From IMG/VR virus record IMGVR_UViG_3300032770_000001, positions 124,001 to 188,000 of that record: a stretch of DNA of 64,000 bases; one strand, written 5' to 3'. Both the position numbers and the translations under genes were made by a program. A model generated the notes under the pieces. The model made no database searches. It saw nothing but the letters and a program-made list of their open reading frames with translations, and was not told the origin of the DNA. Each line of letters begins with the position of its first letter. Position 1 is the stretch's first letter. Shown here one piece after another: positions 23,642 to 58,025 of this stretch.

Positions 23642-26239
23642 ATGGCAGAGAAACCACTTCCAAAGCGTGAGCGGGGCACCCACACCAAAATCGGTAGCAC
23701 GGCAATTAAGCGTCCGGTTTCCAAGGGACCGGACGGTAAGGAATACGCCTCGGCTGGACGCTACACCCACATGAACAAAAAGGGTGAGGTCGTGGAAGAC
23801 TCGATCTCGGCGCAGCTTCGCGCCATCAAAGCTCAGGCTCAGTCCGGTGTAGTGAGTAACAACCCGAACGCCGGATGGGGCATGTACGAGGCAGCTAAGA
23901 TCGCTGCCGGATTGTTCAACGACGGCGGACTGGGCACCGCCGACATCGCCGATTCCAATAACATCGGCTACTACAGCTATGAATTCCCGGTTGACGCTCT
24001 CGAACTCCCGGCGTCCCGTGCAGAAGAACTCCGTTTCTACCGTCTGGCATACGACCGCGATCCAATCGTTGGTCGCGCTATCGACTTGCACACGGAACTC
24101 CCGGTCAGCAAGATGACCATGGAGAAGCCGAAGTCTTCCTCTGAAGAGTACGCCGACTACGTGTTCGACGACTTCCAACGCATGGTCAATCGTACCCGCC
24201 TGTTCCAAGTCATCATCGATGCTGCCCGTGAATACTGGTGCATCGGCGAGACTTTCATGTTCATTGAAGACCCCGAAGAGATTGAGCCGTGCAAGGAAGC
24301 CGCCAAGACCCTCGATAAGGAAGGTAAGGGCGGCGGTAGCGGCACTGAGCAGGGCATGGAATCAGCGTGGCATCCGCCGATGGGCGGCTCAGCCGACTCG
24401 ATTCTGGACTACCTCCAGCCCGAAAAGCGTTCCTCATGGATCAAGAAACGTGCCTCCGTGCTGGATGAAATCAAGAAGGCGGGTATCGCTTTTGATTTCT
24501 ACGAAAATCCGGATGCGGTCGATTCTCGCATTAAGGAAAAGCGTGCTGATCTCAACAAGCTGACCCGGAAGCTCGCTAAGGAAGTGGGTGTTCCAGCGAA
24601 GACTCTTGCCAAGCTCATTATCGACGCCGACAGCGGCGACAAGAAGACCGCGAAAGCGGCAAAGATCAAGATGGCAAAGCTCATCGGTCGCACATTAGGT
24701 GACGATGAGCATCCGCTTCAAGTTACGGCGGATATGACCAAGGTTGCGCAACCTCCTGCCGCTCCTCCTGCGGAGCCTGCGGCTGGTGGTGCGGGTGCCG
24801 GGGCTCCTCCGGGGGCTGATGTCCCTGTGGATGCTCCCGGTGCTGAGGGTGGTGAAGGTGCTCCTCTCGGTGAGGGCGGTTTGGGCGACATCGAGGGTAT
24901 GGGCGGTGGTGGGGCTCCTCCGATGGGTGGAGGCGGGGGCGGTGGTCCGATTGGTACGCCCGGTGGGGCGGTGCCGGATGTCAAGGGCGCTATAGCCATG
25001 GGTGCGACCATCAGTGCTCAGCGTGAGTTGATGGAACTCAAGCACCTGTTGAAACTCCTCGAAAAGCAGAAAGAACTGCTCAAGGAATTGAAAGAGACTC
25101 GTGAAGAGAAGCGCGAGGAGATGGAGTTGTTCTCGCACATTACGAACAAGGACTACGAGGGTCCGGATCGTGTGCAGATTCTTCCGCCTGAACAGATTGA
25201 GATCACCAACGAAGGCACGCTCACTGACGGCCCGACGATCTATTACAAACCGCCTGAGGCACAGAAACAGGCGTACCTCGAAGACCCTGAAGTTCCGAAT
25301 CAGGTCAAGGACGTGATTCAGAGCGAGGGCAAGATTCCGCTCAACCAAGACCCGTTCTCCGGTTCTTACGTGATTCACTTTGCGCGTAAGAAGTCCGGCT
25401 ACGAACTGCATGGTCGCTCGATCCTGCAACGCTGTATTCGCACGATCATCTACCGTGAAAAGCTCCGTCAGGTGCAGTCCACGTTGGCGTCTCGCAACAT
25501 GACGCCGAAGCGTTTGATCGTGGCTCCTGACATTCCGGCATCCGAAGTCATGGCTCTCCGTGCACACATCGACGAAGCCATCGCCGATCCGGACTACTCA
25601 GTGGTTGTCAATTATGAGTGCCGCTGGGAAGAAATTGGTTCGGAAGGCCGTCTGCTCACGCTTGACGCCGAATGGAACCACACCAACTCGGACTTGGCAA
25701 TCGGTCTCGGTCTGTCGCCGGAAATTCTGATCGGCGAAGGCATGTACTCCGGCAACCGCATTCAGTTGGAAATCATGAACGTGTCGTACCTCCAGTTCCG
25801 CGACCTTCTCACGTATGTGATTGAAGAACAAATCTTCAAGCCCTACGCCATGAAGAAGGGCTTCTACGAAATGGACAAGTACGGTCGCCCACGTTGGATT
25901 TACCCGAAGGTCACGTTCAGCCGCATGGCTCTCCGCGACTCCGGTGACCTGTACGACATGCTCTTCAATTTGTACTCGAAGGGCTCGCTGCCAGTCGAAG
26001 TTATTTACGAGTTCCTGAACCTCGATCCTGAGGATTGCGAACGTAAGCTGGAAGAGTCGCTGTTCACCGTTAAGGACGCGAAGTTCAGTCAGTTGCTCGA
26101 CAACATCTACAACTCGATGGGCGAGTGGCTCATGGCGAACACCGATCTGGGTAAGCGCATCACCGAGGGTCTGCAACTGAACGAGGTTGACGCCGATCTG
26201 CAAGACGAAGGACCTGAGGGTTCAGGCGAAGGTATGTAA
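23642..26239 (+). CDS. Portal protein with a large low-complexity insert
   Basis: DPIVGRAIDLH..., HFARK...HGRSILQRC, LAIGLGLSPEIL: the pattern of large-phage portal proteins. Confidence 0.75.
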   Translation: MAEKPLPKRERGTHTKIGSTAIKRPVSKGPDGKEYASAGRYTHMNKKGEVVEDSISAQLRAIKAQAQSGVVSNNPNAGWGMYEAAKIAAGLFNDGGLGTADIADSNNIGYYSYEFPVDALELPASRAEELRFYRLAYDRDPIVGRAIDLHTELPVSKMTMEKPKSSSEEYADYVFDDFQRMVNRTRLFQVIIDAAREYWCIGETFMFIEDPEEIEPCKEAAKTLDKEGKGGGSGTEQGMESAWHPPMGGSADSILDYLQPEKRSSWIKKRASVLDEIKKAGIAFDFYENPDAVDSRIKEKRADLNKLTRKLAKEVGVPAKTLAKLIIDADSGDKKTAKAAKIKMAKLIGRTLGDDEHPLQVTADMTKVAQPPAAPPAEPAAGGAGAGAPPGADVPVDAPGAEGGEGAPLGEGGLGDIEGMGGGGAPPMGGGGGGGPIGTPGGAVPDVKGAIAMGATISAQRELMELKHLLKLLEKQKELLKELKETREEKREEMELFSHITNKDYEGPDRVQILPPEQIEITNEGTLTDGPTIYYKPPEAQKQAYLEDPEVPNQVKDVIQSEGKIPLNQDPFSGSYVIHFARKKSGYELHGRSILQRCIRTIIYREKLRQVQSTLASRNMTPKRLIVAPDIPASEVMALRAHIDEAIADPDYSVVVNYECRWEEIGSEGRLLTLDAEWNHTNSDLAIGLGLSPEILIGEGMYSGNRIQLEIMNVSYLQFRDLLTYVIEEQIFKPYAMKKGFYEMDKYGRPRWIYPKVTFSRMALRDSGDLYDMLFNLYSKGSLPVEVIYEFLNLDPEDCERKLEESLFTVKDAKFSQLLDNIYNSMGEWLMANTDLGKRITEGLQLNEVDADLQDEGPEGSGEGM

Positions 26240-26278: not shown

Positions 26279-29200
26279 GTGATTACAACACTCGACACCC
26301 AGTCATGGTCTAAAGAACTCGTTACCGGAAATGCCCAATTTATTGAGATTTCCGGCATCCTGTACGTGGTGTCTAACGTCCGGGCTGACAACACTTTTGC
26401 CATCCTGCAATCGACTCCGGCTCCCCCGGCTCCCGGCCCCGGCGCTCAATTCACTCCGGTCGCTCCGGTCGCTCAGTATACTTTCCCAGTACCGAACACC
26501 AGCTTCGATCCGGTTGTAGCCTATGACTCGGTTACGGCTGGCGGTCCGTATTTGCACATTATCGGGACGCAGAACAACCCGGACAACCCGCAGTTGAATG
26601 ATCTCGTCAAGTTCACCTTCAACATCAACACACCGAACACCTTGACTCCGGTGATACTGACTTCGGCGTCTTCGATCCGCAATGGATACGACATCATCAC
26701 GCTGGCAAATGGTCATCGTGTTGTCGCTGTAACTACTGTCGATGCCACAATGCAGGGGGCTGAGGTTCCGCCCCTCTTCCAAGCCACGATCACCGCGACT
26801 TCGCTCGCCGGAGCCCCGACGCAACCAGTCCTGACGGTAACGGCGAACAACACGTTCTCACAGGGCCAGCTTGTCAAGCTGAACGGTTTGACCACATCGA
26901 CTTTCTTGAACGGGCAGATCGTGCAAGTGCTCGCCGCGACCAGTACGCAATTCACAGCGATATTCAATGGCTCGAACTATGGAACCACTGGTGATACAGG
27001 TACGGCTACCCCGGTGTATTCCGGCGAAAACCTGCTGGTGTTCGAACTGGACACTTCCGACAATTACATCGCGAACACGCTTCAGATTCTTGCGTCTTCT
27101 CCGGCTCGTTCAGGGAATACGTTTAGCTCGGTTTCGCTCGTCACCCCAATCGATACGGTCAACAACTTCGGCAATGGTCTGAACGTAGAGGTCTATTGGG
27201 AAGCGCATCCCAAAGTCTTCAATTTCACCGATCAACTCTTCACGATAAACGTCGCCAATCGCCAACTCGTGGCTGAGATCACACAGGTTGCGATCACCAC
27301 CAATGTTCTGACGGTCACGGCAAACAACAATTTTCAACCGACGCAGCAGGTGCTTCTCAACGGTTTGACCACCGCCACATTCCTGAATGGTCAAACGGTC
27401 ACCATCACTTCAAATATCAGTGGCACCGCGTTTACGGCGAACTTTACTCATGCCGACTATACGCAGGCGCTCGATACGGGTACTGCTACGCTCACATCCG
27501 GCATTCCGGACTGGGATGTCAACCCCACACCCCTGTTTACGTTCACCGGGCGATACACCGATGACCGTTTGACGGTGACGCCGGACAGCTTTGGCAATCG
27601 CTATTTGAGTCAGACCTACTGGACACAAACCAACCACCCCGAAGGTATCACTGGGAACGTAGTTCTCGGAACACTTCAAGCTGGCGGTTCATGGTTCTTC
27701 CACCCAATTTTGGGTAGTCCAACTGGCGGGTCTATCATCCAAGCGTCCTTGTCAGTCGCACAGAACGGCGATGTCAACATGGCATACTTGCTTCAGCCGT
27801 TCGATCAGATACTTCCGTTGCCGCCGCAAGGCACGCTGCCGTCGTATCCGCTGCATGTGGCTACGATCAATCCGACGACGCTACAGAACACGGATGTTCC
27901 GGGCTTCTACAATCAGCAGCTTTTCACGTGGCTTCGTTCGGCAAAGGGCGCTATCGACAATACGTCACTTTGGGCGATTGTGGGTGAGCGTTCACAGATC
28001 ACGACGGTGCCATCCGAGATTTACACGATTCCGGCGAGCGGCATCGTTCAGGTCGTAAACCACTCTCAATACTGGGAGAATGTCAGCGTCACTTATACGG
28101 CGAACAACGTGGTTTTGACTGAAGTTGAAAGTGATCCAGCACAGACGCAATATCAGGTTGAGCCGAGTGAAGGTAACTACGTTTTCAGCCTGTCGGATGC
28201 AGGCAATCAGATTGAGATCAGCTACAGCTACGTTAGTTCGATTCTGCCTGTTTATGAGTCGCTGTTCAACGTGCCTCCGATTGCTCAGATGAACCCCCCG
28301 CCCCCAAGTCCGGCAATCGTGTATCGTGGGCAGCCGCTTACAATTTCAGCAGCACAGACTTCAGATGCGGACAGCGATCCGATCAAGTTCGTGTGGACAG
28401 AGAACTTCCCGATCCCTTCGCCTCTGGAGTGGAGTTCGGTCACGATTTACGGCATCGGTGATATCGTCGATTATTTCGGCGTGAACTACATTAGCCAGAT
28501 CGCCGACAATCAGAACAACAACCCGGCGAACCTCGGCACATCTCTTTGGCTCCCGCTCAACACTGCGAGTCTCGTGAGCGTTATTCCGTCTCAGACAGGG
28601 GTGACGGCAAGTCTATTCATTGAACCGGGCATCGGCGGTAAAGCAACGACATTTGCTGTTGGTTTGGCGGCTATCGATCTATTCCCTGACAACGTGACGC
28701 CGCGCCATCCGGCCCTTAACGTGACTTCAATTCAAATCACGGGTTCGACCGTCACTTTTACGGTCAATAATACCCCCGCTGGGCTCCCAGTTCTGCCGCT
28801 GATTGCGAGCGAGCAGTTGATGTCGTATTCGATTGTTCTGTCTCCTCCGGCGACTCCGACTCTCGGTACTTATTCTTCAATTGGAGCATCGGCTGCGACC
28901 TACTTCTTCATCGTTACCTACCTCAATTCGGTGGGTGAGACAATCGGCAGTGGTGAAGCAACAATTACCACGCTCGTGGATCAACTACCGCAGGTGACAT
29001 CCCCAGTAGCCAACGGCGATGCGGTCGCTTACAACGTGTATGCTTCAGGCGTCTCCGGTTTTGAAGTATTGCAGACGCCAACACCCATTCCTTTGGGCAC
29101 GCCGTGGCAGTTCCCCGCCTCCGGGTATCTGTCAGGCGCAGTTCTTCCCACGGCTAGCACGGCAGCAGAAACATTTTTGAACGAGCAGGTACTTTTGGTG

Positions 29201-31477: not shown

Positions 31478-32548
31478 ATGGATGGAATGGCTTCCGCATT
31501 ATCTCAGCAAACTGGCGTCGGCGCTGTAATCATCAACAACACAACTGATCTCAGCCGTGCTCTGAAGTTCATTCAGGACGCTCTACCGAACGGGGCGGCA
31601 TACATCATCGTCCAGTTCGTGGATAAACAACTGACTTTCTACCGTTCCGGCAATGAGGGTTACGTGATGTCCAGAGAGTTCGGTATGCACCAGAATCTCG
31701 ACATCGAAACCTGTGTCTCCCTTGCACATTTCAAGGATTGTCTCGAAGCGATGACCGGACGGGTCGATGTTAGCTTGGACGACAAGGGCATCCTCACGCT
31801 AGTGACCTACACCCAGTCGGCTAGCGCCTCTACTACATCTTTGGTGCACACCAAGCCGTTGTCCTCGACCGGGTTGACGCAACACAAGACCGGGCTTCCC
31901 AAGATCAAGTTCAGCCCGTTGCTTTTCCGTAACCTTGACGTGAAAGACATCAAGAACGATTTCAAAATCGCGATCAAGGACAATCGAGTCCTACTGTCGC
32001 CCAATTCCGGAGAGATTCTATGGACGCCGCAGTTCCCCATTGATACCAACATTGCTCCGACTGCCAAGTTTTTGCGCATGGTCGCCTCTAACGAGAAGGT
32101 CAGTGAGCTTTTCCTGACGGAGCGTGACTATTGGGGTGCGGCCATCGGCGACTTTGTGGTCTACATCAAAGGCGTGCCGGACTATCGAAATTCTTTTGCC
32201 AATGCCAACGGTCCGTCTAAGGAAATCTGTCAGTTTACCTCCGAAGCTCTGATGTCCGGGCTCCGTATGGCGAACCTGCGAGCCGGAGACACCGATCTTG
32301 TGGATTTCGACCCCAAGGTTGGAATTGTCTTCCGTGACGCGCAATCAGAAACCCGCACGATTTGTACGCTGGATGCTGTGGAGTTCCCCAAGTTCCGTAT
32401 CAAGGGGGTACAGACAGCTTTGCTGTACAACATGCTCCGACAGACGGAAGACGAGTTGATTGTCCTTTCCGAGATCGAGACGGCAGTTTTGCCGACCTAT
32501 CGTTTCACACGCGGAAATATCGCGGTAAACGTCAAGCTGAGCTACTAA
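31478..32548 (+). CDS. Possible sliding-clamp-like protein
   Basis: 356 aa (close to beta-clamp size), alternating alpha/beta pattern, DnaX present in the window; no decisive motif. Confidence 0.4.
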   Translation: MDGMASALSQQTGVGAVIINNTTDLSRALKFIQDALPNGAAYIIVQFVDKQLTFYRSGNEGYVMSREFGMHQNLDIETCVSLAHFKDCLEAMTGRVDVSLDDKGILTLVTYTQSASASTTSLVHTKPLSSTGLTQHKTGLPKIKFSPLLFRNLDVKDIKNDFKIAIKDNRVLLSPNSGEILWTPQFPIDTNIAPTAKFLRMVASNEKVSELFLTERDYWGAAIGDFVVYIKGVPDYRNSFANANGPSKEICQFTSEALMSGLRMANLRAGDTDLVDFDPKVGIVFRDAQSETRTICTLDAVEFPKFRIKGVQTALLYNMLRQTEDELIVLSEIETAVLPTYRFTRGNIAVNVKLSY

Positions 32549-34411: not shown

Positions 34412-35158
34412 ATGAGAACTCAATACGACGTGCCGACAGTCTTGTCGCTGGTGGACGAGAAGTTCGCCGATGCAACTGCTCGCGGCAAGACCTTCACCAA
34501 GTTCTCGGTAACGAAAGACAAGATTGTCGAACTGCGTGGTTGGCAACAGACCCTTGATTTGTTTGAGAAGCATTTCGATCAAGTCCTGACTGACCTTAAG
34601 ATCGTTTACGTTCCTCGGCAAATCCCTCCCGGTCCGATGGTAATCTTCCCCATCCGAGATGTGGATGGTGAATACAAGTACGCTCAAACCAAACCGCTCG
34701 AAGGCAGTGAGTTCTTCCATCCGGAGAAGAAATATTACTACATCGGTCGCGAACCTATCGGCCCTCGTTGGTTGGGCAACGATCCGGCAACGATCAAACT
34801 CATCCTGCAAAAACGTGTCGTCATCGTGGTGGAGGGTCCGTTTGACTTCCTCGCGGCTCGATTACTCTGCCCGAATGCGCCGATTATGAGCCCTCTGACC
34901 AAAACTCTCGGCCCGAAACACATCGCCTATCTGCGGATGCTTGGAGTCAAAGAGGTCGTGTTCATGTACGACAGTGAGGTCAGCGGCAAGGGGCAGGGAG
35001 CCGCCAAGTACCAATCCAAGCAACTTCAGGATTTGCCATACATGAAGACCAGCATTCTCCGTATCGCAGGCGGCGGCGATCCTTCCAAAGTTCTGCAATC
35101 CCCCCTCTACGCAAAGCAACTAAAAAAGCAAATAGATACTTGTCTTTTCGGTCGCTAA
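34412..35158 (+). CDS. DnaG-type primase catalytic (TOPRIM) subunit without a zinc finger
   Basis: IFPIRDVDG, VVEGPFD, FMYD TOPRIM pattern. Confidence 0.8.
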   Translation: MRTQYDVPTVLSLVDEKFADATARGKTFTKFSVTKDKIVELRGWQQTLDLFEKHFDQVLTDLKIVYVPRQIPPGPMVIFPIRDVDGEYKYAQTKPLEGSEFFHPEKKYYYIGREPIGPRWLGNDPATIKLILQKRVVIVVEGPFDFLAARLLCPNAPIMSPLTKTLGPKHIAYLRMLGVKEVVFMYDSEVSGKGQGAAKYQSKQLQDLPYMKTSILRIAGGGDPSKVLQSPLYAKQLKKQIDTCLFGR

Positions 35159-35738: not shown

Positions 35739-36908
35739 ATGGGCGTTGATACTCACAAAGTAGAAGTCGTTCCCGTAGTGCTGGAACCACATCCAGACCC
35801 GGAGACGACCGCACTGTCCGTGGTGAAGATTTACAACTTCACCGTGGTCGTTCGCACTGAAGACTGGAAGGGAGTGGAGCGAGCCGCGTATGTGCAGCCC
35901 GACTCTATCCTTCCCGACAAGCCGGAGTTCCGTTTCCTGAAGATTACCGGGAACATCAAGCGTGAACTTGATGCTCTTGAGGGACTCACCGGGCCGGAGG
36001 CCGACGCACAGCGTGCGGCTCTTGAAGCCAAGATCGATATGAACACCAAGTATCTGTGCATTACGGTGCGCAAGCTTCGTGGTGTCATGTCGATGGGGAT
36101 GTTGCTGCCGCTGCCTCCGGGATATGAGAACGCGGAGTACGGCACCGATCTGGCTGATGTGCTCGGCATCACGCATTACGAGCCGCCAACTGAAGAGGAG
36201 CAGGTCAAGTCCCGCCGTCACGCAGGTGACGATGTCGGACCGCCTCCTCCGTCCTGCATCTACGCTCCGTCTTATGACGTGGAGTCTGCGTACAAGTACG
36301 CTTCTCTGTTCGAGCCGGGTGAGATGGTCTACGTATCGGAGAAAATCGACGGGCAGAACGCTCGTTTCGTGGCAACCGATGCTGACAACGAATGGCGTCG
36401 TGAAGAGACTCCGGGTGGACAGGTAAGCTCTGTTCGCGATATCACTCTCTACGCTGGTAGCCGCAACGAGTGGAAAAAGAAGGAAGGCGGCTCCAACTGG
36501 TGGAGAGTGCAGGAGCAGAACGAGTGGATTCCACGCTGGTGCTACGACAATCAGGATCGCGTCATGTACGGCGAGACCTTTGGTTGGGTAGCCAAATTGA
36601 AGTACGGCGCTAAGCAGGGACAGTTGTTCTTCCGCGCCTTTGACGTGTTGGACGGAACGGAATACTGGGACGCGGAGAAGTTCATCGCTGAGTTCCACGA
36701 ATCCCTCCGTGCCCCTTCACTCGGCATCATGCCGTTCGATTGGGAAAAGCTCGTCAAACTGGCGGACGGTCCGTCCCTTATTCCGGGGGCGAACAATATT
36801 AGGGAAGGGATTGTAATTAAACCTGTTAAAGAGCGTCGTCATTACAAACTCGGACGTGTTTTTGTCAAACTGGTGAGCAATGCCTATCTCGAACAGTCCA
36901 GCCGCTAA
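35739..36908 (+). CDS. ATP-dependent RNA ligase (DRB0094-like, N-terminal OB domain)
   Basis: EKIDG, GETFG, FDV, REGIV, KLVSNAYL; N-terminal PHP..L.V OB-like segment. Confidence 0.88.
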   Translation: MGVDTHKVEVVPVVLEPHPDPETTALSVVKIYNFTVVVRTEDWKGVERAAYVQPDSILPDKPEFRFLKITGNIKRELDALEGLTGPEADAQRAALEAKIDMNTKYLCITVRKLRGVMSMGMLLPLPPGYENAEYGTDLADVLGITHYEPPTEEEQVKSRRHAGDDVGPPPPSCIYAPSYDVESAYKYASLFEPGEMVYVSEKIDGQNARFVATDADNEWRREETPGGQVSSVRDITLYAGSRNEWKKKEGGSNWWRVQEQNEWIPRWCYDNQDRVMYGETFGWVAKLKYGAKQGQLFFRAFDVLDGTEYWDAEKFIAEFHESLRAPSLGIMPFDWEKLVKLADGPSLIPGANNIREGIVIKPVKERRHYKLGRVFVKLVSNAYLEQSSR

Positions 36909-37443
36909 CGCTCTCGATCTATCGGGACAGACGTTCGGTCGATTGACCGTGATGTCTCGTTCCGGTCGGTCGCGAGGTAGGCAAGCTGTTTGGCTCTGCT
37001 CGTGCACTTGCGGGGCTGAAACGCACGTCCGTGCAACCCAGCTACGCAAAGGCAAAACCAAATCTTGCGGTTGTCTGAAGGCTGAACGCTACCACTGGAC
37101 CGGGTATCAGGAGATCAGCGGAGAGTTTTGGTCGAATCAGAAAACGCACGCTCAGTCTCGTGGGCGGTCGTTCACGCTGTCGATTGAGCAAGCTTGGGAA
37201 TTGTTTGTTCAGCAAGGGCGAAAATGTGCCTATACGGGGCTGCCGTTGACCTTTTCCGGTTGCTACCACCGCGATAAAGCAGCGCAGACTGCTTCTCTGG
37301 ATCGCATAGACAGCGCAGGCAACTACACGTCGGATAACGTTCAGTGGGTGCACAAGGACGTGAACATGATGAAACAGAAACTTTCTCATGAACGGTTCAT
37401 CGAACTGTGCAGACTCATAGGAGAAAACCAATGTCGAATTTGA
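36880..37443 (+). CDS. Free-standing HNH-type homing endonuclease
   Basis: GQTFGRLTV...WLCSCTCG...SCGC N-terminus; CAYTG...SLDRIDS...NVQWVH..VN. Confidence 0.85.
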   Translation: MPISNSPAANALDLSGQTFGRLTVMSRSGRSRGRQAVWLCSCTCGAETHVRATQLRKGKTKSCGCLKAERYHWTGYQEISGEFWSNQKTHAQSRGRSFTLSIEQAWELFVQQGRKCAYTGLPLTFSGCYHRDKAAQTASLDRIDSAGNYTSDNVQWVHKDVNMMKQKLSHERFIELCRLIGENQCRI

Positions 37444-40992: not shown

Positions 40993-42324
40993 ATGTTCGG
41001 ACGTGGTAATTGGGCCGTATTCGGCATCAAGAAAGAAAGCCTCAAGAAGTTTCGCAAGAACCTGAACAATGAAGTGGTCATGCTGGACGTGAGCCAGCTT
41101 GGTGCCTCGATCAAAGCGAAGTTCCTGAATCAGACCAGCTACGGCATCAACCCCTTCGCCGATCCCCGCAAGGATGAAAAGCTGACGGTCGCCAAGCACT
41201 CCACGCTAGCGGAATACTTTGCACAGCCGAAGGATGTGCGCGAACTCCTCTCCGAAGGTGAACTGGAAGTGACGCAGCAAGGCTACGGTCTGGCTGAGGA
41301 ATTCGAACTCCCTGATCCCGGTGCTGATGGCGTCGAAAGCCACTACTACGGGCTCTGGTTCGTCATCAACGAACAGGAAGATGTCACCGATCCGGCGTCC
41401 AAGAAGGAAGCCATTTCCTACAAGGACATGACCAAGCCCTTCAAGTTCCTGAACAAGGATGAGAAGAAGGCAGTCGAAGCACAGGTCAAGCTGACCGCTG
41501 TCCCCGCCCGTAAGCAATTCGCCGTGTTGCTTGATTTCGCCGACGAACGTGCCTATGTCGAATCCTCTAGCCAAGACGATGTGCTGGCGGTGCAGACGGT
41601 GCTCAATCAGCTTGGGGCCGACATTTTCTCGATGGCGTGGCAGTTTGACGATTGGGATTGGACAATTCGCTTTCTCAACAAGGTCAACTCCGAGACCCAT
41701 TACGAAGAGCAGATGGCAGAGCGTGCCGATGAACTGACCCGTTTCCGCCCGGATGAAATCGCCAAGATGGACGACCGCATGATGGAGTCCATCGTCAGCA
41801 ATTTCTTCGCTCTATCGCAGTTGGACACCGGGGACTGGTGCGGCTTGACAACCCCGACCCGCATCCGCCTCTATCCGACTACCGACCCAGCGACGGTCGC
41901 CAACGTTAGCACAGCGTTCAGCCTGCTGCGAGTGACCGACAAAGCGATGGTCGCCTCTGCTTCACTGGTTTTCCAGTCCCTTGAGTCCTATGTCGTCAAG
42001 AAGACGGACGAAGAGAAGCAAGTGCGTAAAGACCTGTTCACTCTCGATCTCAACGACAACATCAATTTGAACGATGCCGGAGCCGGAATGCTCCGTGGCT
42101 TCGATATGCCCCAATTCAAGAAGGACATCAAGACGGCGATCAAAGCCCAAGAAGGCGGCTTGTCCATCGCCGAATACTGGAAGAACTGGCTCCAGTCCAT
42201 GCGTGAGGCTGTTTACAAATTCACCGACAACGTGACCGAGACTCTCGCCATCGACAAAAAGAAGTACGGACTCAAGCCATTTGCTGTTGAAGTCAATGAG
42301 CCGGAGTCTGTGGAGGTCGAATGA
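40993..42324 (+). CDS. RdgC-like protein
   Basis: KKAVEAQVKLTAVPARKQFAVLLDFADERAYVESSS..V..V...LG resembles the RdgC core as recalled. Confidence 0.5.
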   Translation: MFGRGNWAVFGIKKESLKKFRKNLNNEVVMLDVSQLGASIKAKFLNQTSYGINPFADPRKDEKLTVAKHSTLAEYFAQPKDVRELLSEGELEVTQQGYGLAEEFELPDPGADGVESHYYGLWFVINEQEDVTDPASKKEAISYKDMTKPFKFLNKDEKKAVEAQVKLTAVPARKQFAVLLDFADERAYVESSSQDDVLAVQTVLNQLGADIFSMAWQFDDWDWTIRFLNKVNSETHYEEQMAERADELTRFRPDEIAKMDDRMMESIVSNFFALSQLDTGDWCGLTTPTRIRLYPTTDPATVANVSTAFSLLRVTDKAMVASASLVFQSLESYVVKKTDEEKQVRKDLFTLDLNDNINLNDAGAGMLRGFDMPQFKKDIKTAIKAQEGGLSIAEYWKNWLQSMREAVYKFTDNVTETLAIDKKKYGLKPFAVEVNEPESVEVE

Positions 42325-45795: not shown

Positions 45796-47067
45796 ATGAA
45801 TCTGATCGCCCAATATCCGACTGAGTGGAATGCTGTCGTAGGGCAACAACGAGCCATCAGCATCCTTCAGCACATCCTCAGAAATAGGCATTTCATGACG
45901 CGGGGCTTCTTGCTCTATGGCGTCCTCGGCACGGGCAAGACAGCGACCACGAATCTGCTGGCACGGGCGTTGCTTTGCGAGGTTGATCCTCTCGGCTGCG
46001 GTAAGTGCTCATCCTGCCTGATGGTCACCAAGGACAACTTCGAAGGTTTCGCTAACCATAGCGATTATAAGGGCGTAGACGCAGCGGAGAAATCCGGTGT
46101 GCAGGACGCACGTGATCTGATCGACATCATGACCGGAACCCCCAATGAGGGTAAACGCCGGGTAGTGGTGATCGACGAAGCTCACCGTCTTTCCAAGGAA
46201 GCATGGGATGTGTTCCTAAAACCCCTCGAACAGGGGCGAGAAAACGATATGCGGACGATTTTCATCTTCGTCAGCAATCAACCCGACCTGATCGCAGGCA
46301 CCATTCGGTCACGGCTCACGCGCATTCCGTTTGAGCGGCTCCATGCAGACACAATTCGAGGTTATCTGGCTCAAGTTGCGGCTGCCAATAACATCGAATA
46401 TGAGCTTGACGCTCTTTCCATCATCGCTCGGTATTCTAAAGGCGTCGTTCGGGAAGCCAAGAACATCCTCGGCACCGTAGCGGCATGTGGTAAAGTCACC
46501 ACTGAATTGACCAAGATGATTCTGGATACTTCTCTGGAAGACATCTCGGTCAAAATGCTTCTCGCAGTTGCCCGGAAGGACTTCCGGCAGACTATCGATC
46601 TCGCCGACGAACTTGGACGTAAGGCAGCACCGTCTAAGTGTGTTGAGACCCTGTTCTCCGTTTATGGTCGGGCAATCTTTCAGCCGGAAGAGGACATGCA
46701 GAAGATCGCTAACGGGTTGCCGAATGTCCGTGAGGTTACCGATCTGTTCATCGCTTGGTCGATGACGAAGGACCTACCCACCGACATTCTGCCCGTGATA
46801 GGATATGAACTGTTGCAGCTTGTAGCTGGCGGCGTCCCCGGCGTTAAATCAAAAACCGGACAGCGGCAACCGCGAATGGCGGTGAATGCTGGTTCCGTAT
46901 TGTCGATGCTAAAGACCCCATCAGACGCGGCAATTCGTGAAGGGGCTTTGCCTGAGATTGTAGAGACGGCTGATGATGTCGCCGCGTTCTTAAACACGCC
47001 CCCACCAGTTACAATAGCGGCACCCAAGGTGAGGTTAGATGCAGGAAATCCAGAAGACCCAATGTGA
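45796..47067 (+). CDS. dnaX: Clamp loader, DNA polymerase III gamma/tau-like
   Basis: VGQ, GVLGTGKT Walker A, CGKCSSC, IDEAH, TIRSR. Confidence 0.92.
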   Translation: MNLIAQYPTEWNAVVGQQRAISILQHILRNRHFMTRGFLLYGVLGTGKTATTNLLARALLCEVDPLGCGKCSSCLMVTKDNFEGFANHSDYKGVDAAEKSGVQDARDLIDIMTGTPNEGKRRVVVIDEAHRLSKEAWDVFLKPLEQGRENDMRTIFIFVSNQPDLIAGTIRSRLTRIPFERLHADTIRGYLAQVAAANNIEYELDALSIIARYSKGVVREAKNILGTVAACGKVTTELTKMILDTSLEDISVKMLLAVARKDFRQTIDLADELGRKAAPSKCVETLFSVYGRAIFQPEEDMQKIANGLPNVREVTDLFIAWSMTKDLPTDILPVIGYELLQLVAGGVPGVKSKTGQRQPRMAVNAGSVLSMLKTPSDAAIREGALPEIVETADDVAAFLNTPPPVTIAAPKVRLDAGNPEDPM

Positions 47068-49975: not shown

Positions 49976-51220
49976 ATGATCTTGGAATATGGTGATACTT
50001 CCAAACTCAAGGGCCTTTCATGGTATATGCTTGAACTCAGAAGCGACAAAACCGTTGAGCCCACCATGAAGCGACTCGGCGGCGAGTTGAAGGGAATTTT
50101 CCGCAACGACCCCATCGAAGTCTTCGTTCCAGTCCAGAACCGCGACCTCGACACTTTCGATATGTCCACGCTCCAGTACGTGTTCGTCCGGAGCAATAAT
50201 TTCCAGTCCCTTCTCCGGCTCAGACAGGTGACCGGGGCGTGCGGATTGGTGACCAAAGGTGAGTCCAACCGTCCCTCCGATGCCATCCCCGTGGACGATG
50301 AATACGTGCAGGGGCTCGTCCACGACGCCGAGGAGGAGCACCGCAAGCGTGCGGTCGGCATCGAGGTCGGCAGCTTCGTTCGTATCCTCCAAGGGCAGAC
50401 TCGTGACTTTTGCGGCACCGTGGAGATCGTCGGCGATGGCAAGGCGGTCGTCAAGATCACCCTGTTGACCAAGTACATCATGCTGGAGACCCCGATCCGC
50501 AATCTTTTGAAGCTCCCGGACGTACCCGCCAACAAGCGGGTCTACTATTTCGGTCCGCTGGTGAACGACCTGAGCCCGGAGGAACTCTCCCTGATCGAAC
50601 AAGACCTCCATCTTGACGATTCCATGCCCGTAGAGGTCATGGAAGAGCAGCAGGCTGAGGAGCCTAAACGTCATTCGCGGCAGCGCACGGTCACGGCATT
50701 GGTCAAGAAGCTGGTTCTGCTGGAAGGGCTGCATAATCCGTTGGAAATTGCCCGTGTGGTGCTCGAAGCCCTCAAGAACGATGAGATTAAGGCTCCCAAG
50801 AACCTGTTCATCATCTACGGGATCATCAAAGACCGCCTGATGAAGGACTATTTTTTGGTGAAAGACCCGGAAGTCAAGACCTATCGTGACGTGATCCACA
50901 AATACGGCAAGGCTTACAAGTTTTCTGCGAATCAGATTGCTAAGTTAGACGCGGCAATCAACATCCCGATCAACACGTCGGAGCCAGCCGATGAGGTCGT
51001 GGTGGTCGAGAAGAAGCAACGCGGTCCGAAAAAACGCCGCAAGCTTCCTCACGACAAGTGCAACACCTGCTACCACACCCGCGAGCAGCATAAGCCGACT
51101 CCGAAGGGTAGCTGGGGACGTTGTTCCGGCATCAGCGATCACACGATTCACTCGTGGGTCAAGCCGGGAACCTCAAACCCGTGCACGTGTGTCCGATTTA
51201 AGGAAAGAGCAGTCAAGTAG
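49976..51220 (+). CDS. nusG: NusG-family (NGN plus KOW) transcription factor with a C-terminal extension
   Basis: WYML...EVFVP...YVFV NGN domain; VGSFVRILQG...GTV KOW domain; about 240 extra residues. Confidence 0.8.
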   Translation: MILEYGDTSKLKGLSWYMLELRSDKTVEPTMKRLGGELKGIFRNDPIEVFVPVQNRDLDTFDMSTLQYVFVRSNNFQSLLRLRQVTGACGLVTKGESNRPSDAIPVDDEYVQGLVHDAEEEHRKRAVGIEVGSFVRILQGQTRDFCGTVEIVGDGKAVVKITLLTKYIMLETPIRNLLKLPDVPANKRVYYFGPLVNDLSPEELSLIEQDLHLDDSMPVEVMEEQQAEEPKRHSRQRTVTALVKKLVLLEGLHNPLEIARVVLEALKNDEIKAPKNLFIIYGIIKDRLMKDYFLVKDPEVKTYRDVIHKYGKAYKFSANQIAKLDAAINIPINTSEPADEVVVVEKKQRGPKKRRKLPHDKCNTCYHTREQHKPTPKGSWGRCSGISDHTIHSWVKPGTSNPCTCVRFKERAVK

Positions 51221-51253
51221 AAAAAGTAGCGTAACGCCAAAAGGCGTAATGGA

Positions 51254-52060
51254 GTGTTTATGGCAACAGCAACATCACCAAAAACAGGCGGCGAACTGGG
51301 TAAGATTCGCGCATTTCTTCTGGATCACGAGCGTCTTCTGATCGTCCTCGTGGCAGCGGTTGTGATCTATCTCGGCTACGTGAAGGTCACCAACATCATC
51401 GCCAATCACGATAATGCGCAATTACAGCAACAGAAGCTCATCAACGAGCAACAAGCGGCGAAGAACCAAGCCATGCTCGAACAGCAGCAGAAGGACGATG
51501 TCCTGCGTCAGCAGGAGGAAGCGGCTCGCGAGGCTGAGGCGCAGAAACTTCAGGCTCAGAATCAGGCTCTCGTGAACGCGAACACGGCCTTAGCAGCCGC
51601 CCTGAGCAAACAGCAAAAGCAAGACGCTACGCTCGCTCCGACCGAATTGGCAGCCCGCTGGCAGCAATTGGTGCCCGCAGCCCCGCCTGCGAGCGTTACA
51701 GTCGCGGCAGACGGCAATATGCAGACAACTCCAGCAGCAGCCGTGGCGACGGTTCAGCAATTGGAGCAAGTCCCGGCCTTGACTCAGCAGCTAGCTAATG
51801 AGAAGACGCAGGAAGCCAACGATCAGACCATGTTAGCTTCCGCGAACACAGCCATTGGAAACCTCAACTTGAGTCTTACGGACCGAGACAAGCGCATCGA
51901 TGGTTTGAACCTCACCATTACGGGCAATCAGAAGCAGTGCGAGGATGAAAAGAAGGTCATCAAGGATCAGGCCCGCAAATCGAAACGTCGCTGGTTCATC
52001 ATCGGCTATGTCGCGGGGTTTGTGTCCCGTCAGGTCATAAAAAGCTACACGGGACTGTAA
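51254..52060 (+). CDS. Membrane-anchored Q/A-rich coiled-coil protein (spanin-like?)
   Basis: N-terminal TM segment, long coiled coil, hydrophobic C-terminus. Confidence 0.6.
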   Translation: MFMATATSPKTGGELGKIRAFLLDHERLLIVLVAAVVIYLGYVKVTNIIANHDNAQLQQQKLINEQQAAKNQAMLEQQQKDDVLRQQEEAAREAEAQKLQAQNQALVNANTALAAALSKQQKQDATLAPTELAARWQQLVPAAPPASVTVAADGNMQTTPAAAVATVQQLEQVPALTQQLANEKTQEANDQTMLASANTAIGNLNLSLTDRDKRIDGLNLTITGNQKQCEDEKKVIKDQARKSKRRWFIIGYVAGFVSRQVIKSYTGL

Positions 52061-52091
52061 AAATTCGAGTATTACATATTCAGGAGACAAC

Positions 52092-53504
52092 ATGAAAATC
52101 ATTTTCCTATTCGACCAGCTTGATGCAGAAGGCAAGGTCGTTTCCGCCAACACCAACCCCTACGTCGTTGCACCAGAGAACCTGCAAATGAAGCAGCTTG
52201 CTCCGGGGCAGACGGGGATCGGACTCACCGTGTCGCAGAAGAACGATAAGGGTGAGGATGTTCCACAGTTCGTTTCGATCATCCAATTCCCGGTCAATAC
52301 AATTCCGGCACTTCCGACGCTCGACGCCGAAATCGAATACCTGAAGAGCTTGCTCACGCAGAAGATCGCGGCTCAGTCGGTGGAAGCGGAAGTCGCCAAG
52401 GCAAAGGCTGCGGCAGCAACAGCGACTCCGGCAGCGGAAGCACCGAAGGTTAATGGTGCGGCTAAGCCGAAGAAGGCGAAGAAAAGCTCGAAGTAAGTTC
52501 AGGACGTAAGTGGCGATGATCCAGTCACTTACCCCTGAATGAGAGCGGTTCACGCAATATTGGAGTATTGAATGGACGCAGTGAAGGTTCTCAATCGCGA
52601 GTACGCGGATAACCCGTATGTGTTCGAGGATGATCCGTCTTGGTTGCTCATCGCGCTTAAAGCGGGTGAGATCAAGACAGAGTTCCGCAGCGAGGACTAC
52701 TGGTACTACGTGGTTCGGACTCCGTCCGGCTTAAAGGACGCGACACCCGGCGATCTGATCGTTCACTTGGCGGATGGTTCGCTCGATGTTTTCGTTCGGA
52801 AGGACAACTAAATGAAGGTTGAAAAAGTCACAGTACATCGGCTGACTGTCGAACGTGAATGTGGTTGCACGGCGACCCGTGAGTATACGGACCCACAATA
52901 CAAAGAGCCCATTGACAAGGGTGTCTACGAAGCTTGCAAGAAACACAAGGCGAAGGCCGATCTTGCCGAGATGATGGGCATGATTATGCTCGAAGACTTG
53001 GAGCGTGAAGCTCAGGTTCAGGCGGCTCCCCCGACCCCACAGTATGCTCCTCTCCGCGTGCCAAACGCGACTCCAACGACTTTAGACGGTACCACATCCG
53101 ATGGTGGTGAAGTCACCAGTGTGCCGATCACTCGTCCACGTCCACGTATACAAGCGGCTCCGGTTGCCAATGGCGGCGGGGGCGGTGGTCGCCAAGTTCC
53201 GCAAAGTAGCGGACAAGGGCCGCGTCGTGATCCGACGCAGGTTCGCACCGTCAATCGCGATCATGCAGCGGTGGGACGCCGAGGTCAGTTGACTGGACGC
53301 GCCCCGGTCACTAGCGTCACGGCGAGTTCTCCGGCAGCGGGTGCTCCAAAGCGTGGCGAGGTAGTGCAGGTCGGCGATGTCGAACTGGCAACCCCCGGCT
53401 TTGATCTTGACATAGGTGAAGAAGTTCCAGAAGACCCACGTGCAACACGCCTTATTGAGGCGGCATTGTTGCCCGATCTCGAAGACGATCCAACACAGGC
53501 ATAA
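52092..53504 (+). other. Three hypothetical ORFs (52092, 52572, 52812)
   Basis: RBS present; 52812 has CGC/C..H and a P/G-rich tail. Confidence 0.65.
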
Positions 53505-53507
53505 ATC

Positions 53508-53900
53508 ATGAAAAAGTTAGACGTAAAAAAAGAAAAAGGACAGCCCGAAAAATCAGTCAAATCCGCTCGGTATGCGCATGTGACTCTCGTGTTGGCACCG
53601 GAGATTCCATGTTCCGAAGTTTCGGCACTGGAAAAGCATTATCAGGAAGCCATTGACGACCCGAACTATTCGGTTATCGTCAATTACGACCTGTATACCA
53701 AGGACGCCTTCTTTAACGTTGACGAAGAGTTCGTTGTGTTGACCGCTCCCGGTCTTCCCCTTGAAGAACTGCGCAAGTTTCGCAAAAAATTCGACCGTGC
53801 GGTACGTCTTTCCAAGAAGACGAAAGGCCGCGTGTACATTTTTGCCAATTACGATGTGACCGTTGAAACTCGCCTCGCGGCGGGATCGATTCTTCACTAA
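53508..53900 (+). CDS. Small protein made of two copies of a portal-like segment
   Basis: 22/35 identity by eye to the portal residues encoded at 25514-25618. Confidence 0.75.
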   Translation: MKKLDVKKEKGQPEKSVKSARYAHVTLVLAPEIPCSEVSALEKHYQEAIDDPNYSVIVNYDLYTKDAFFNVDEEFVVLTAPGLPLEELRKFRKKFDRAVRLSKKTKGRVYIFANYDVTVETRLAAGSILH

Positions 53901-55675
53901 TGCCTAAGACACGCAACCATCAGACGGGACGCCAGATTACAGTCGAATGCATTCCGTGCTACGACGAAGAGGGCAGCCGCGCCTGTATTCGGCATCACCA
54001 CAAAAACCCGCATCCAATCTATAACGACCCCACCAATCCGGCGTTAGCTCCGTTGACGGATGACAATCCGTTCATTCGCCGGGGTAAGCAGGATCGTGAC
54101 GAGCGGAAAGCGATGCTGACTGCGTTCAAGAAAAAGTACATCGGGTATTATGCACCATCCTCGGCTCTGTTCGGCAGTGAGCCGTACATCGAGATCGATG
54201 GGGATTTGAATGTGCACGGTGCCAGTGCGGAACACGACATCGTGTTCTATCGCGCTGGATGGGATGCGGCTTTCGAGTACCTCAGAAAACGTCTCAATGG
54301 ATAACGATTGGAATCCGAAGCATTTCGACGAGTGGGGTAATGAATACGTCCTCGACGAGAACGGTCGGCGGTTGCCGCCGATGCAGGCTGAGCCCAAAAA
54401 ATCCAGTGGATTCACCTATTACGACAGTTCCCAACATTGCGGTCTTTGCGGTAGAATGGACTGTAGAGGAACCTGTTTCAAATGAGATGTCAATGGGACG
54501 CATCGTCTTGGCCCTCAGGGGGCTATCTCTTAGAGTTTGATGAGAAACTTTGCTGCGGCAAACCCGGTCGTTTTCTAAACGACCCACAACACCCAGCTTG
54601 GCTCTGCGAAGATCACTACGCCGAATGGATGTCCACTCCGGGAATCGCCGATGACATCTGCAACCTTTGTAAATCCTATCCTTGTGAACTCTGGTGCAAG
54701 TACGAGTATCCAATTGACTTGCGTCCTGTTATAGTAGAGGCTGACCATGTCTCCGAAACAGAAACCCGGCAAGACCAAGGCGATTCAGGAAGCCCACGCG
54801 AAGGTACGCGCTGAGCAACATTACGGCATCAGCCTGAACAATGAAGATCGCCGGAACATCGTCAAGATGATTCAGGGAGATGGGGAAGGTGCACAGTTCG
54901 TTGGGCGCACGTCCAACCGTGCCTCTTTGTGGAAGGTCGATTACAACGACGTTTCCATGAACGTGGTATACGACAAGACCCGGCATTCCATCAACACCGT
55001 TTTACCCACAAATGCTGTGGAATTCTCGTGCTCCGTGAAGCAATCTCAGACCACTCCCGATTGTATTGAATGTCAGCAAACGCCCTGCCAGTGCCCCGGT
55101 AATTGGTCGGACTACGACTTCTCTAAGTAGGGGGTTCTGTTATGCTTCTTTACTACACCAAAGGCTATCACAACGCTTTTGTTCGTTTCCTGCACAGCTT
55201 CTTCATCCAGATGCCGTTGACAGTCTGGTTTCGTTTCATCAGCATCCTGTTCTTTTGGCAGAAAGCCACATTCGTCAATCACAGTGGGCTGAGCGATCAG
55301 CAACTCGCAGACATCTGGAAGCAGGTGCAGCAGACAACTGCCACACAGCCGTTCCAGACTGGTGACGGAGCCAAACCCGGCGATCCGCGTGCTCTCACGC
55401 TCCAACCGAAAAACCTTACGGTCACGGCGGTGCCGGACTGGAAGATTTCCGATCTGATAAAGATCGACCCGGCGTGGGCGAAGGACAAAGACCCGTCAGG
55501 TTCATTTGCCGTCATCGACAACGGTCTGCTCGGCTACGAAACCGTGGCAGGCATCACGCTGTGCTGGTATAAGCCGCGCATCTACGGCGCTGCGAGTGTT
55601 ATGGCGGCGGTTCTTCAATGGGAGTTCCAGAACGTCATCCTCAACAAGCTTGGCTACAGCGTCGAAGGTCGATAG
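53900..55675 (+). other. Run of small hypothetical ORFs (53900, 54297, 54482, 54747, 55142)
   Basis: Tiling ORFs. Confidence 0.6.
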
Positions 55676-57180
55676 GCTTTAACGCCCCGGTACAGGGCTG
55701 AGGCTTGAACGATCAGCTTGTGGTCCGCCGCCAGTACGGGCTCGTAATGGGTGTCCCAATATCCGAGCCCGTACCCTTTCCAACACTGGAGGCTGATGGT
55801 GTGGGACAGCTTGGGGCGTCCGCACTTCCGGCAGCGTAATTCTACAGTATCCGCCACGCGACCAGTCTATCACGGAACAGGCAACCCGCCACGAATAGAA
55901 CGATCAGCGTCGGCACAAAGACCGCGAAGAGCCGCCACGGTTTGAGAATCAGCATCGCGATCAGGTTGCAGATCAAAGCTACTCCGAGTGCGATAGGCAT
56001 ACTTCCTCCGATTTTGTGCCGTCCTGATGGACGATGGTGTGGTCGTGCGACAGCATGAGAAGCATCCGATCAAGGATGTCCAGCGCCCATTTGTCCAGAT
56101 CACGCGAGGACAACTGTTGCGGCATGTGCGCGTTGAGTCCTTGACCCTTCCACGGCTGCGTCATTGAATCTTGCTTCCAATCTGGCTGAACACGTTGCTA
56201 GCGTTCGAGCCGATGAGACGGACGACGCTCAGGGCGATCACCAAGATGATCGCCAGCATTACCGCGTATTCCGCAACATCCTGTCCTGATTCGTCCTTCC
56301 AAAGATACTTCAACATATTGGGGGCTCCCTTCTTTATTGCCAGTCTGATGCGTCCGGAATTGGTGCACCTTCGTCGCACTTCTTCGACTCCTCGCGGAAT
56401 CGCTCGATGTGCTTCTGACAGAAAGCTTCCAGTGCACCCATACTGTCGAAAAAGTCGGTGACGGTTCCATAACGGATACCCGCGTCCGGCTCCCCATGCC
56501 AACCGATGGCGTAAACTGGTTGACTCATCACGCCCTGATCGGTCAGAACGGTCACGTCGAACAATTCGCAGACTTCTTTCACAGCCGGATAATCCACCTG
56601 TGTGCTGTTGCTCATTTGACCCTCCGCGCCTCTACGAATCTGTAATTCTCCCATCCCTTAGTCTCGGCGTAAATACCACCAGCGTGCCATTTGTTGTCAG
56701 TCGTCTGGTAGGTGCTCATCCAAGCCGCAGGCGTATCGACGTGAAAGCTTTTCTTCTGCACCACGGTGCCGTCCGGCAGGGTCGCTTCGTAGGTCGATGC
56801 CTTCTTACCGCGAGTCGCTCCCACGCCGCCGCGTTGACCATAGGTGTTGCCTTCTTCGCCGTCGAATTTGCCGCGATAGTTGCTCATTGCTTCGGTTCCT
56901 CCGGGACGATTGTGTCGGTGTCAATCACGAACCGCAACGGCTTGGTCTCGACGCCCCTTGCCGCCCGAATCCTCCGGGCGATGTCCGCCAGATTGATTGG
57001 CGGTAACGGAAGCGGATAGATGGTCGGAGCAGGTTTGGAATCACCAAACGATACTTCTACGACCGGGTTGCTCTGCTTCGACGTGACCGAGATCGTGTCG
57101 GCAGCTTTAACTCGACCTGACGGTTCCTGCGCGAACGCCGGAACCGCAAACACTATGCACAGCAGAATGCGATATCGCAT
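55654..57180 (-). other. Leftward operon of small coupled ORFs (56884, 56612, 56334-56615, 55979, 55654)
   Basis: ATGA overlaps; 56884-57180 has a signal peptide. Confidence 0.6.
56161..56316 (-). CDS. flp: Flp (type IVb/Tad) pilin, 51 aa
   Basis: GGAG RBS; MLKYLWKDESG|QDVAEYAVMLAIILV: prepilin G|xxxxEY motif followed by a TM helix. Confidence 0.85.
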   Translation of the reverse strand: MLKYLWKDESGQDVAEYAVMLAIILVIALSVVRLIGSNASNVFSQIGSKIQ

Positions 57181-58025
57181 TAGTCAAGCCCCCACTTTCT
57201 ATTCATCTCTTTCACATCCAGCGGGTTGGTGCGGAAGCGGTTCGTCCAGAACTTGCGTGCTTCCTTCTCATCCTGCATTTCCCCGTCCATGTGGTAGTAT
57301 TCCGGGTTGTTGTTAATCATCCACTCGATCATTTCCTCGATCTCGGCAGGCGTCGGCTTGGGAGTGATCGTTCTGACCACGGCAGGCAGTTCCTCGTTGT
57401 GGTAATTGATGAACGGCTTGCCATTCATCGGAGCAAAACGGCCAACCGGGTCGTTCTCCGGCGTTGGCTTGTCCATCGAAACTTTGTGCGGCTCCGCGTT
57501 GATCGGGGGCATCGTGCACGGCATTTCAAAACCAGCCGCCTTCGTCCGGCACTCCGGTCCGAAACCGCAGGCGACCGATTCGTCCACAGTCAGCTTCCGA
57601 CCGCAGCGACCGCAGTGACCTTCATGGAAGAACTCAAGCTGCTCCGGCATGTGTTTCTTGGTCAGGTGCTCGAAGGTGAATTTGAAACCCTTAACCGAGG
57701 GGGCATCTTTGCCAGCGCACGCTTTGGCACCGCCGTGGATGAACTTGCCGCCCTTGATGAAGCCGAAGTAGGCGTAGTCGGTCTCGTTGTTCGGGCCGTT
57801 CATGAGTTTCACGAAATAGACGGGCGGGGCATCGACCGGGTCAGTGGCGCGTTTGGGCGCTTCTTCCAGCTTGAAGGTGAAGCGGTCGCCGGACTTCTTG
57901 CTGACCAGCGTGAAGCTGTAGCCGGAGAACAGGTACGCGAAAGCCAGAACCGGGTCGGTGATTACGCCGGGTCGCGCTTTCTCTTCCTCAGGTTCGGGGT
58001 TGACAGCGTTGTTCAGTTCGTCCAT
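57180..58025 (-). CDS. DUF6011-like Zn-finger protein
   Basis: CGRCGRKLTVDESVACGFGPEC; TGG-TAGAAT 6 nt before the ATG. Confidence 0.75.
   Translation of the reverse strand: MDELNNAVNPEPEEEKARPGVITDPVLAFAYLFSGYSFTLVSKKSGDRFTFKLEEAPKRATDPVDAPPVYFVKLMNGPNNETDYAYFGFIKGGKFIHGGAKACAGKDAPSVKGFKFTFEHLTKKHMPEQLEFFHEGHCGRCGRKLTVDESVACGFGPECRTKAAGFEMPCTMPPINAEPHKVSMDKPTPENDPVGRFAPMNGKPFINYHNEELPAVVRTITPKPTPAEIEEMIEWMINNNPEYYHMDGEMQDEKEARKFWTNRFRTNPLDVKEMNRKWGLD

Follow-up and report, generated by a model that had tools for sequence, protein, structure and literature searches.

A small accessory protein of a huge wetland phage is built from two tandem copies of a portal module placed by topology at the clip

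The portal proteins of tailed phages, such as T4 gp20, Mu gp29, JBD30 gp32, and the HK97 portal, carry a clip domain that serves as the hub of head completion, with terminase docking on it during packaging and the adaptor docking on it afterwards. In T4, the adaptor gp13 inserts its C-terminal arm between the clip helices of two adjacent gp20 subunits (PMC12929587), and the clip cleft is likewise the docking site in Mu (PMC11915804). In JBD30, the adaptor C terminus wedges into the groove between two clip domains, and a clip loop intertwines between neighboring subunits (PMC11445458). The clip also contacts large terminase during packaging (PMC10359639). The portal is, in addition, one of the conserved proteins that bacterial immune sensors read. 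Avs4, Avs11, and RAZR recognize the portal protein or its ring, so they are candidate ligands for a clip mimic, and Avs12 is a documented adaptor sensor. The texts we searched did not establish which portal surface these systems read, and RAZR binds the ring circumference, not demonstrably the clip. Phages also encode molecular mimics and decoys, for example, DNA mimics such as Ocr, listed among anti-defense proteins in bioRxiv 10.1101/2025.06.06.658234. Known mimics imitate DNA or host factors, and none of the anti-Avs proteins described in that compendium is a portal fragment.

We analyzed a stretch of 64,000 nucleotides (here called the window), comprising bases 124001 to 188000 of the 455,708-bp IMG/VR virus record IMGVR_UViG_3300032770_000001, which is rated 100% complete and is found in wetland metagenomes; no RNA run was listed. 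A first-pass annotation of the window had claimed that a small open reading frame (ORF) is made of tandem copies of the portal's own segment, that this segment is probably the clip, and that the product could be a decoy for portal-sensing (Avs-type) defenses, a packaging regulator, or a competitor exclusion factor. The observation itself was confirmed. The features of the locus and of the portal gene, all on the plus strand, are as follows.

53508..53900 (+), gene for the small protein, P0001 (130 amino acids [aa]), a member of an undescribed family of tandem portal-clip-module proteins; its start lies 3 nucleotides (nt) after the stop of the upstream gene, and its stop overlaps the ATG of the downstream gene
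53508..53570 (+), Lys-rich N-terminal tail (residues 1 to 21), with lower model confidence and no regular structure
53571..53711 (+), module 1 (residues 22 to 68), a strand, a helix, and then the portal-like strand ending in N-Y-D; the copy closest to the portal, with residues 45 to 62 in the predicted subunit interface
53721..53879 (+), module 2 (residues 72 to 124), a degenerate copy with a longer, basic helix; residues 71 to 85 and 118 to 130 form the other face of the predicted interface
23642..26239 (+), portal gene (P0002, 865 aa) with an insertion of ~270 residues; the closest cultured relative is Tunturiibacter phage Tunturi_5 gp7
25505..25621 (+), portal residues 622 to 660, the strand-helix-strand module shared with P0001, placed between stem helix 594-617 and the tunnel-loop block, which is the clip position
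52812..53504 (+), upstream gene (230 aa, no known family), the conserved left flank of a variable slot
53900..54304 (+), downstream gene (134 aa, no known family), the conserved right flank of the variable slot

BLASTP aligned residues 12 to 61 of P0001 with portal residues 610 to 659 at 24/50 identities (E value of 1e-12). The 35-residue segments singled out in the first-pass annotation, encoded at 53586 to 53690 and 25514 to 25618, share 22/35 residues, as claimed. In the whole 455.7-kb genome, P0001 and the family profile hit only these two places. The second, degenerate copy is also real, with module 1 and module 2 profiles aligning in hhalign at a probability of 99.4% and an E value of 5.3e-22; within P0001 alone, only 5 of 5,000 shuffles reach the observed local score. 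One correction is needed, because calling the module the portal's own segment overstates how recent the copy is. The DNA of the shared segment is only 62% identical, third-codon identity is 12/35, and only 8 of the 22 identical residues use the same codon. The capture is therefore ancient, and the similarity is maintained by selection rather than by recent duplication or gene conversion.

P0001 is not an orphan. A word-indexed protein search with P0001 found only itself, and a phage GenBank collection gave no DNA or protein match for the locus or the protein, but an exhaustive search of 1.84 billion protein representatives found 45 proteins at E values below 1e-3. All but one of these are small (67 to 210 aa), the exception being a portal. 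A profile search added further members, giving about 60 small proteins (49 to 210 aa, with one, two, or three modules) from soil and wetland huge-phage contigs. The family alignment shows two tandem modules, each consisting of a hydrophobic strand ending in A-P-x-I-P, a helix, and then D-P-x-Y and a strand ending in N-Y-E/D. One member has three modules, a 49-aa ORF has a single module, and in some members the second copy is the more portal-like one. No member matched a Pfam, PHROG, or NCBIfam family. The consensus of module 1 equals the portal clade consensus at 26 of 36 positions, and the family profile aligned with the portal stem-clip profile at a probability of 99.1% and an E value of 6.4e-19, over 44 columns at 50% identity. 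A PDB sequence hit to 3e0z (E value of 0.033) was treated as chance, and a hit to a 183-aa ORF of phage G (E value of 0.0015) was likewise judged to be chance. Two family members, P0028 and P0043 (the latter encoded at positions 1046 to 1678 of its contig, L012), carry twin-arginine-like N termini (R-R-x-F-L, then a hydrophobic stretch), as does an unrelated ORF next to a single-module gene (contig L108, 1843 to 2334), hinting that some members may be exported or membrane anchored. P0043 also ends with a copy of the portal's N-terminal motif (about portal residues 107 to 137).

The portal fold of P0002 is confirmed. P0002 matched PHROG 16240 (portal protein) at an E value of 4e-24, and its model aligned with lambda, Chi, G20c, and T4 portals at VIA Z scores of up to 13.5 over residues 120 to 794. 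Its nearest cultured relative is gp7 of the 308-kb phage Tunturi_5 (53% identity), followed by an uncultured 485-kb phage and Bacillus phage G. The portal insertion (window 24330 to 25140, residues ~230 to 500) contains a Gly/Ala/Pro-rich low-complexity stretch (about 365 to 445) and a long helix (444 to 497), and it is conserved in the clade and in Tunturi_5 but absent from the 564-aa portal of LR745208. The portal gene is embedded among replication-type genes (window 17895 to 47067), mirroring the Tunturi_5 gene order, with a 1,483-aa ORF in the position of the DNA polymerase (17895 to 22346), a processivity factor (31478 to 32548), a primase-like gene (34412 to 35158), an RNA ligase (35739 to 36908), an HNH endonuclease (36880 to 37443), and a clamp loader (45796 to 47067). 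The 1,723-aa ORF just after the portal (26279 to 31450), whose Tunturi_5 counterpart is annotated as a minor tail protein, contains several internal repeats of about 60 aa sharing an L-N-G-L-T-T-x-T-F-L-N-G-Q-like motif.

Placement of the shared module within the portal rests on topology. The portal monomer model, built from an alignment that left out three portals from the phage-record collection, is mediocre (mean pLDDT of 55.6) and weakest exactly in this region (pLDDT below 50 to 60), but its topology is canonical, with a long helix at 594 to 617, a short helix at 633 to 648 inside the shared module, and then a long helix at 705 to 739. A profile of the portals aligned residues of about 676 to 750 with residues 316 to 393 of YonE, the SPbeta portal (9pha), and a profile of the subregion placed 676 to 703 on YonE 315 to 343 and, in a very weak and nonsignificant match, 591 to 625 on YonE 216 to 250. 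This leaves the shared module (about residues 624 to 660) in the intervening stretch, before the tunnel-loop region (YonE 315 to 393). Single modules of the P0001 model aligned with midchain parts of six solved portals (Milano, P1, Mu, Mycofy1, phiXacJX1, and the 3kdr portal) among the top 50 of 48,161 chains, at Z scores of only 2.4 to 3.4. We infer that the module is probably the clip, a placement well supported by topology but not proven residue by residue.

With an alignment of 44 family sequences, AlphaFold2 predicted a confident fold for P0001 (pLDDT of 93.2 and pTM of 0.79), with strand 22-29, helix 35-50, strand 63-70, strand 74-79, helix 85-105, and strands 108-113 and 118-123. The secondary structure fits a strand-helix-strand layout, although the portal-like strand of module 1 (residues 55 to 61) has no DSSP strand assignment in the monomer model. 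The whole fold had no significant match in Foldseek searches of the PDB, AlphaFold clusters, or BFVD or in the Atlas structure search. When four copies were folded together, the partner copy scored an ipSAE of 0.84 (runs of 0.79, 0.84, and 0.84), against 0.08 for the best of three controls. In calibration, that mark was reached by 20 of 30 proteins solved as homo-pairs and by 1 of 23 solved as single chains, but the calibration used two copies and its own alignments, so these counts hold only roughly for our four-copy prediction with our own alignment. The predicted contacts are head-to-tail, with residues 26, 42, 45 to 62, 64, and 94 to 112 of one copy (chiefly the face 45-62/107-112) meeting residues 71 to 85, 88 to 96, and 118 to 130 of the next. 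These faces carry the conserved motifs shared with the portal. The prediction supports, but does not show, that the protein chains up through clip-like strand contacts, and it does not fix ring closure or subunit number.

The gene is accessory. Among 15 long IMG/VR contigs (221 to 463 kb) with related portals, the family profile hit every portal (E values of 3e-7 to 2e-16), but only one contig has a tandem small protein, in a different gene neighborhood, and two have a single-module ORF. Tunturi_5 has no tandem small protein, but one clip-like module lies near the C-terminal third of a 352-aa ORF (contig L009, 727 to 1785; module at 50849 to 50989 of the record; profile E value of 3.7e-4), and the module therefore also occurs fused to other sequence. 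The closest homolog of P0001, P0003 (49% identity), lies in contigs syntenic with window positions 49976 to 55675. A 126-aa gene of a related contig (L114) sits in a position syntenic with P0001 but is unrelated to it. A search for related loci with the upstream neighbor found no relative, and an exact flank pattern was absent from IMG/VR. On the opposite strand at 57180 to 58025, a DUF6011-containing protein (PHROG 20259) recurs downstream of the P0001-type locus in related contigs (L017 and L114).

Contigs of four other wetland samples, compared with window positions 52500 to 55700, match the flanks but leave 53570 to 53890 uncovered, and in three of the runs (X2, X3, and X5) loose ends sit at 53505 and/or 53900, the borders of the ORF. 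Recovery of the variant showed that in these sister strains, with flanks about 97 to 99% identical and differing at only a few bases, the slot (53505 to 53900) holds a different, 83-aa clip-like gene, P0183 (contig L115, 83 to 334; also L116, 1257 to 1508, and L117, 83 to 334). P0183 is 20/28 identical to portal residues 631 to 658, is 53% identical to family member P0043, and keeps the portal's Arg and Asp on the helix, but it lacks the first strand of the module. Both alleles occur in several independent contigs with the same neighbors. Other strain variants in wetland samples are all in frame, with one contig skipping 144 nt inside ORF 54747-55130 (54815 to 54960), another having a 9-nt deletion at 54413, and another a 3-nt deletion at 53178. 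Gene-sized allele replacement at a fixed locus, together with sporadic presence among relatives, is the pattern expected of accessory genes engaged in conflicts, although it does not prove such a role.

Compared with the portal clip, P0001 shows sequence homology to the clip-position module, has the same strand-helix-strand layout in its predicted structure, and is predicted to use its strands for subunit-to-subunit contacts, as clip elements do in portal rings. It differs in lacking stem, wing, and crown, in carrying two modules in one chain, in being a separate gene 28 kb from the portal, and in its accessory distribution. With 130 aa, only the repeat modules, and no portal PHROG or Pfam match, P0001 is not a portal. 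The exposed helix residues that are invariant in portals, R640 and D644, are E and Q in P0001, and this allele is therefore not a faithful copy of the helix surface. Like known phage mimics, P0001 is a small accessory protein proposed to act by imitating a surface that other proteins recognize, and its variable, cassette-like locus fits that class. The tautomerase/MIF superfamily offers an architectural analogy only, in that both use a strand-helix-strand building block that occurs singly or in tandem and assembles into symmetric oligomers (for P0001, as predicted).

The first-pass interpretation was thus partly supported, its structural part holding and its functional proposals remaining hypotheses. 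Our analysis establishes that the module was captured from a portal gene long ago and has been kept under selection in a family of one-, two-, and three-module proteins, and it predicts with high confidence that the protein folds; the protein is also predicted to join head-to-tail with further copies through the same conserved strands it shares with the portal. That P0001 is a free, selected, and probably self-assembling version of the portal clip we consider likely. What it does is inferred. In solved portals, neighboring clip domains form the cleft where the adaptor's C-terminal arm wedges, and the clip as a whole is the surface that large terminase contacts first, so that a chain or ring of free clip modules would imitate that docking surface, offering such grooves without the rest of the portal. 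We tentatively take P0001 to act as a competitive binder (decoy) for something that recognizes the clip. Because the gene is accessory, lies among small genes of unknown family, and is replaced by a different clip-like allele in near-identical sister strains, we favor a role in conflict, either blinding a host sensor of the portal or interfering with the packaging or neck proteins of coinfecting relatives, over routine regulation of the phage's own assembly. The conserved family, the predicted head-to-tail self-assembly, the accessory distribution, and the allele replacement in sister strains fit a conflict or mimicry role without selecting a ligand, and for a decoy of portal sensors the evidence is only circumstantial. 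Weighing against this reading are the loss of R640 and D644, the weak structural similarity to solved clips, the unreliable portal model in the clip, and the twin-arginine-like N termini, which, if real export signals, would place those two members outside the cytoplasm, away from terminase, adaptors, and Avs proteins. The candidate ligands also remain hypothetical, since neither the large terminase nor the adaptor of the phage was found. Searches with PF03237 and PF17289 located no large terminase, and the only TerL_nuclease hit in the genome was a subthreshold match (PF20441, E value of 0.013) in the 443-aa ORF 40993-42324, so that the terminase of this phage is divergent or split.

Other readings appear less likely. 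P0001 could instead dock by strand pairing onto portal protomers, since its two faces resemble the two edges of a portal clip, and it would then either cap or poison ring formation (for example, against coinfecting relatives) or chaperone the phage's own portal until the prohead is initiated. The predicted interface does use the portal-like strand of module 1 and the portal-like first strand of module 2, which carry the motifs shared with the portal, and clip elements of neighboring subunits intertwine in solved portals. However, a protein able to poison related portals would also threaten the phage's own portal (63% identity in the module), and most complete relatives assemble portals without such a gene, leaving this possible but unlikely. 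Slightly less likely still is a housekeeping regulator that transiently occupies the adaptor's C-terminal arm, or the terminase, to time docking on the portal. The clip is the shared docking site of both, and the gene is translationally coupled within an operon that is syntenic in the closest relatives, but sporadic distribution among relatives with the same portal, allele swapping between near-identical strains, and differing genomic contexts would be unusual for a core regulator. An extra structural ring of clip-like modules stacked at the portal or neck, for example, six two-module subunits giving 12 modules, is doubtful. Head-to-tail assembly is predicted, and one-, two-, and three-module versions can each divide into 12, but the gene lies among replication-type and unknown small genes rather than structural genes and is absent from most complete relatives, and the closed-ring stoichiometry is pure speculation.

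Two further possibilities are very unlikely. An enzyme of the 2H phosphoesterase (Acb1/LigT-like) or tautomerase type was considered because both are also built from duplicated strand-helix-strand units, because a language-model feature search of the Atlas listed 2H-SAK/Acb1-bearing viral clusters at 0.83 to 0.88, and because Foldseek listed MIF and tautomerases at the top of nonsignificant hits. Those feature scores are below the lead threshold of the method, none of 44 members matched a 2H or tautomerase Pfam model, and the conserved His lies midhelix without the H-x-T/S pair. P0001 has a Lys-rich N terminus without the catalytic Pro1, TM-scores are about 0.2, the root mean square deviation exceeds 13 Å, and there is no sequence relation to tautomerases. 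The missing catalytic motifs effectively refute this reading. A neutral remnant of a partial portal duplication has nothing in its favor beyond small size and lack of annotation, and it is countered by conservation of the family across more than 45 clusters at under 50% identity, with motifs retained despite saturated synonymous sites, by the confident predicted fold, and by intact ORFs in several samples. At the speculative end, we cannot exclude, though we think it improbable, that P0001 and its relatives assemble into free rings of 12 clip modules (six two-module, four three-module, or twelve one-module subunits) that would reproduce the portal's docking surface and blind portal- or adaptor-recognizing immunity of the Avs4/Avs11/RAZR type. 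In this view, the rapid allele replacement between sister strains would be the signature of that arms race, and this would be the first anti-defense protein derived from a fragment of the phage's own sensed structural protein.

The portal clip is a known domain; what is new here is a stand-alone tandem version that founds an undescribed protein family. A conserved, stand-alone version of this module, predicted to self-assemble, has not been described in the family libraries or in the literature we could search. The allele pair at one locus (130 aa and 83 aa) in otherwise near-identical genomes offers a ready-made comparison, and a cultured relative that lacks the tandem form of the gene (Tunturi_5 on Tunturiibacter) offers a test bed. 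If the protein sequesters a clip ligand, it gives a natural tool to dissect terminase-portal and adaptor-portal recognition, and it would also be a new class of phage countermeasure or interphage weapon, made by recycling a piece of a structural protein.
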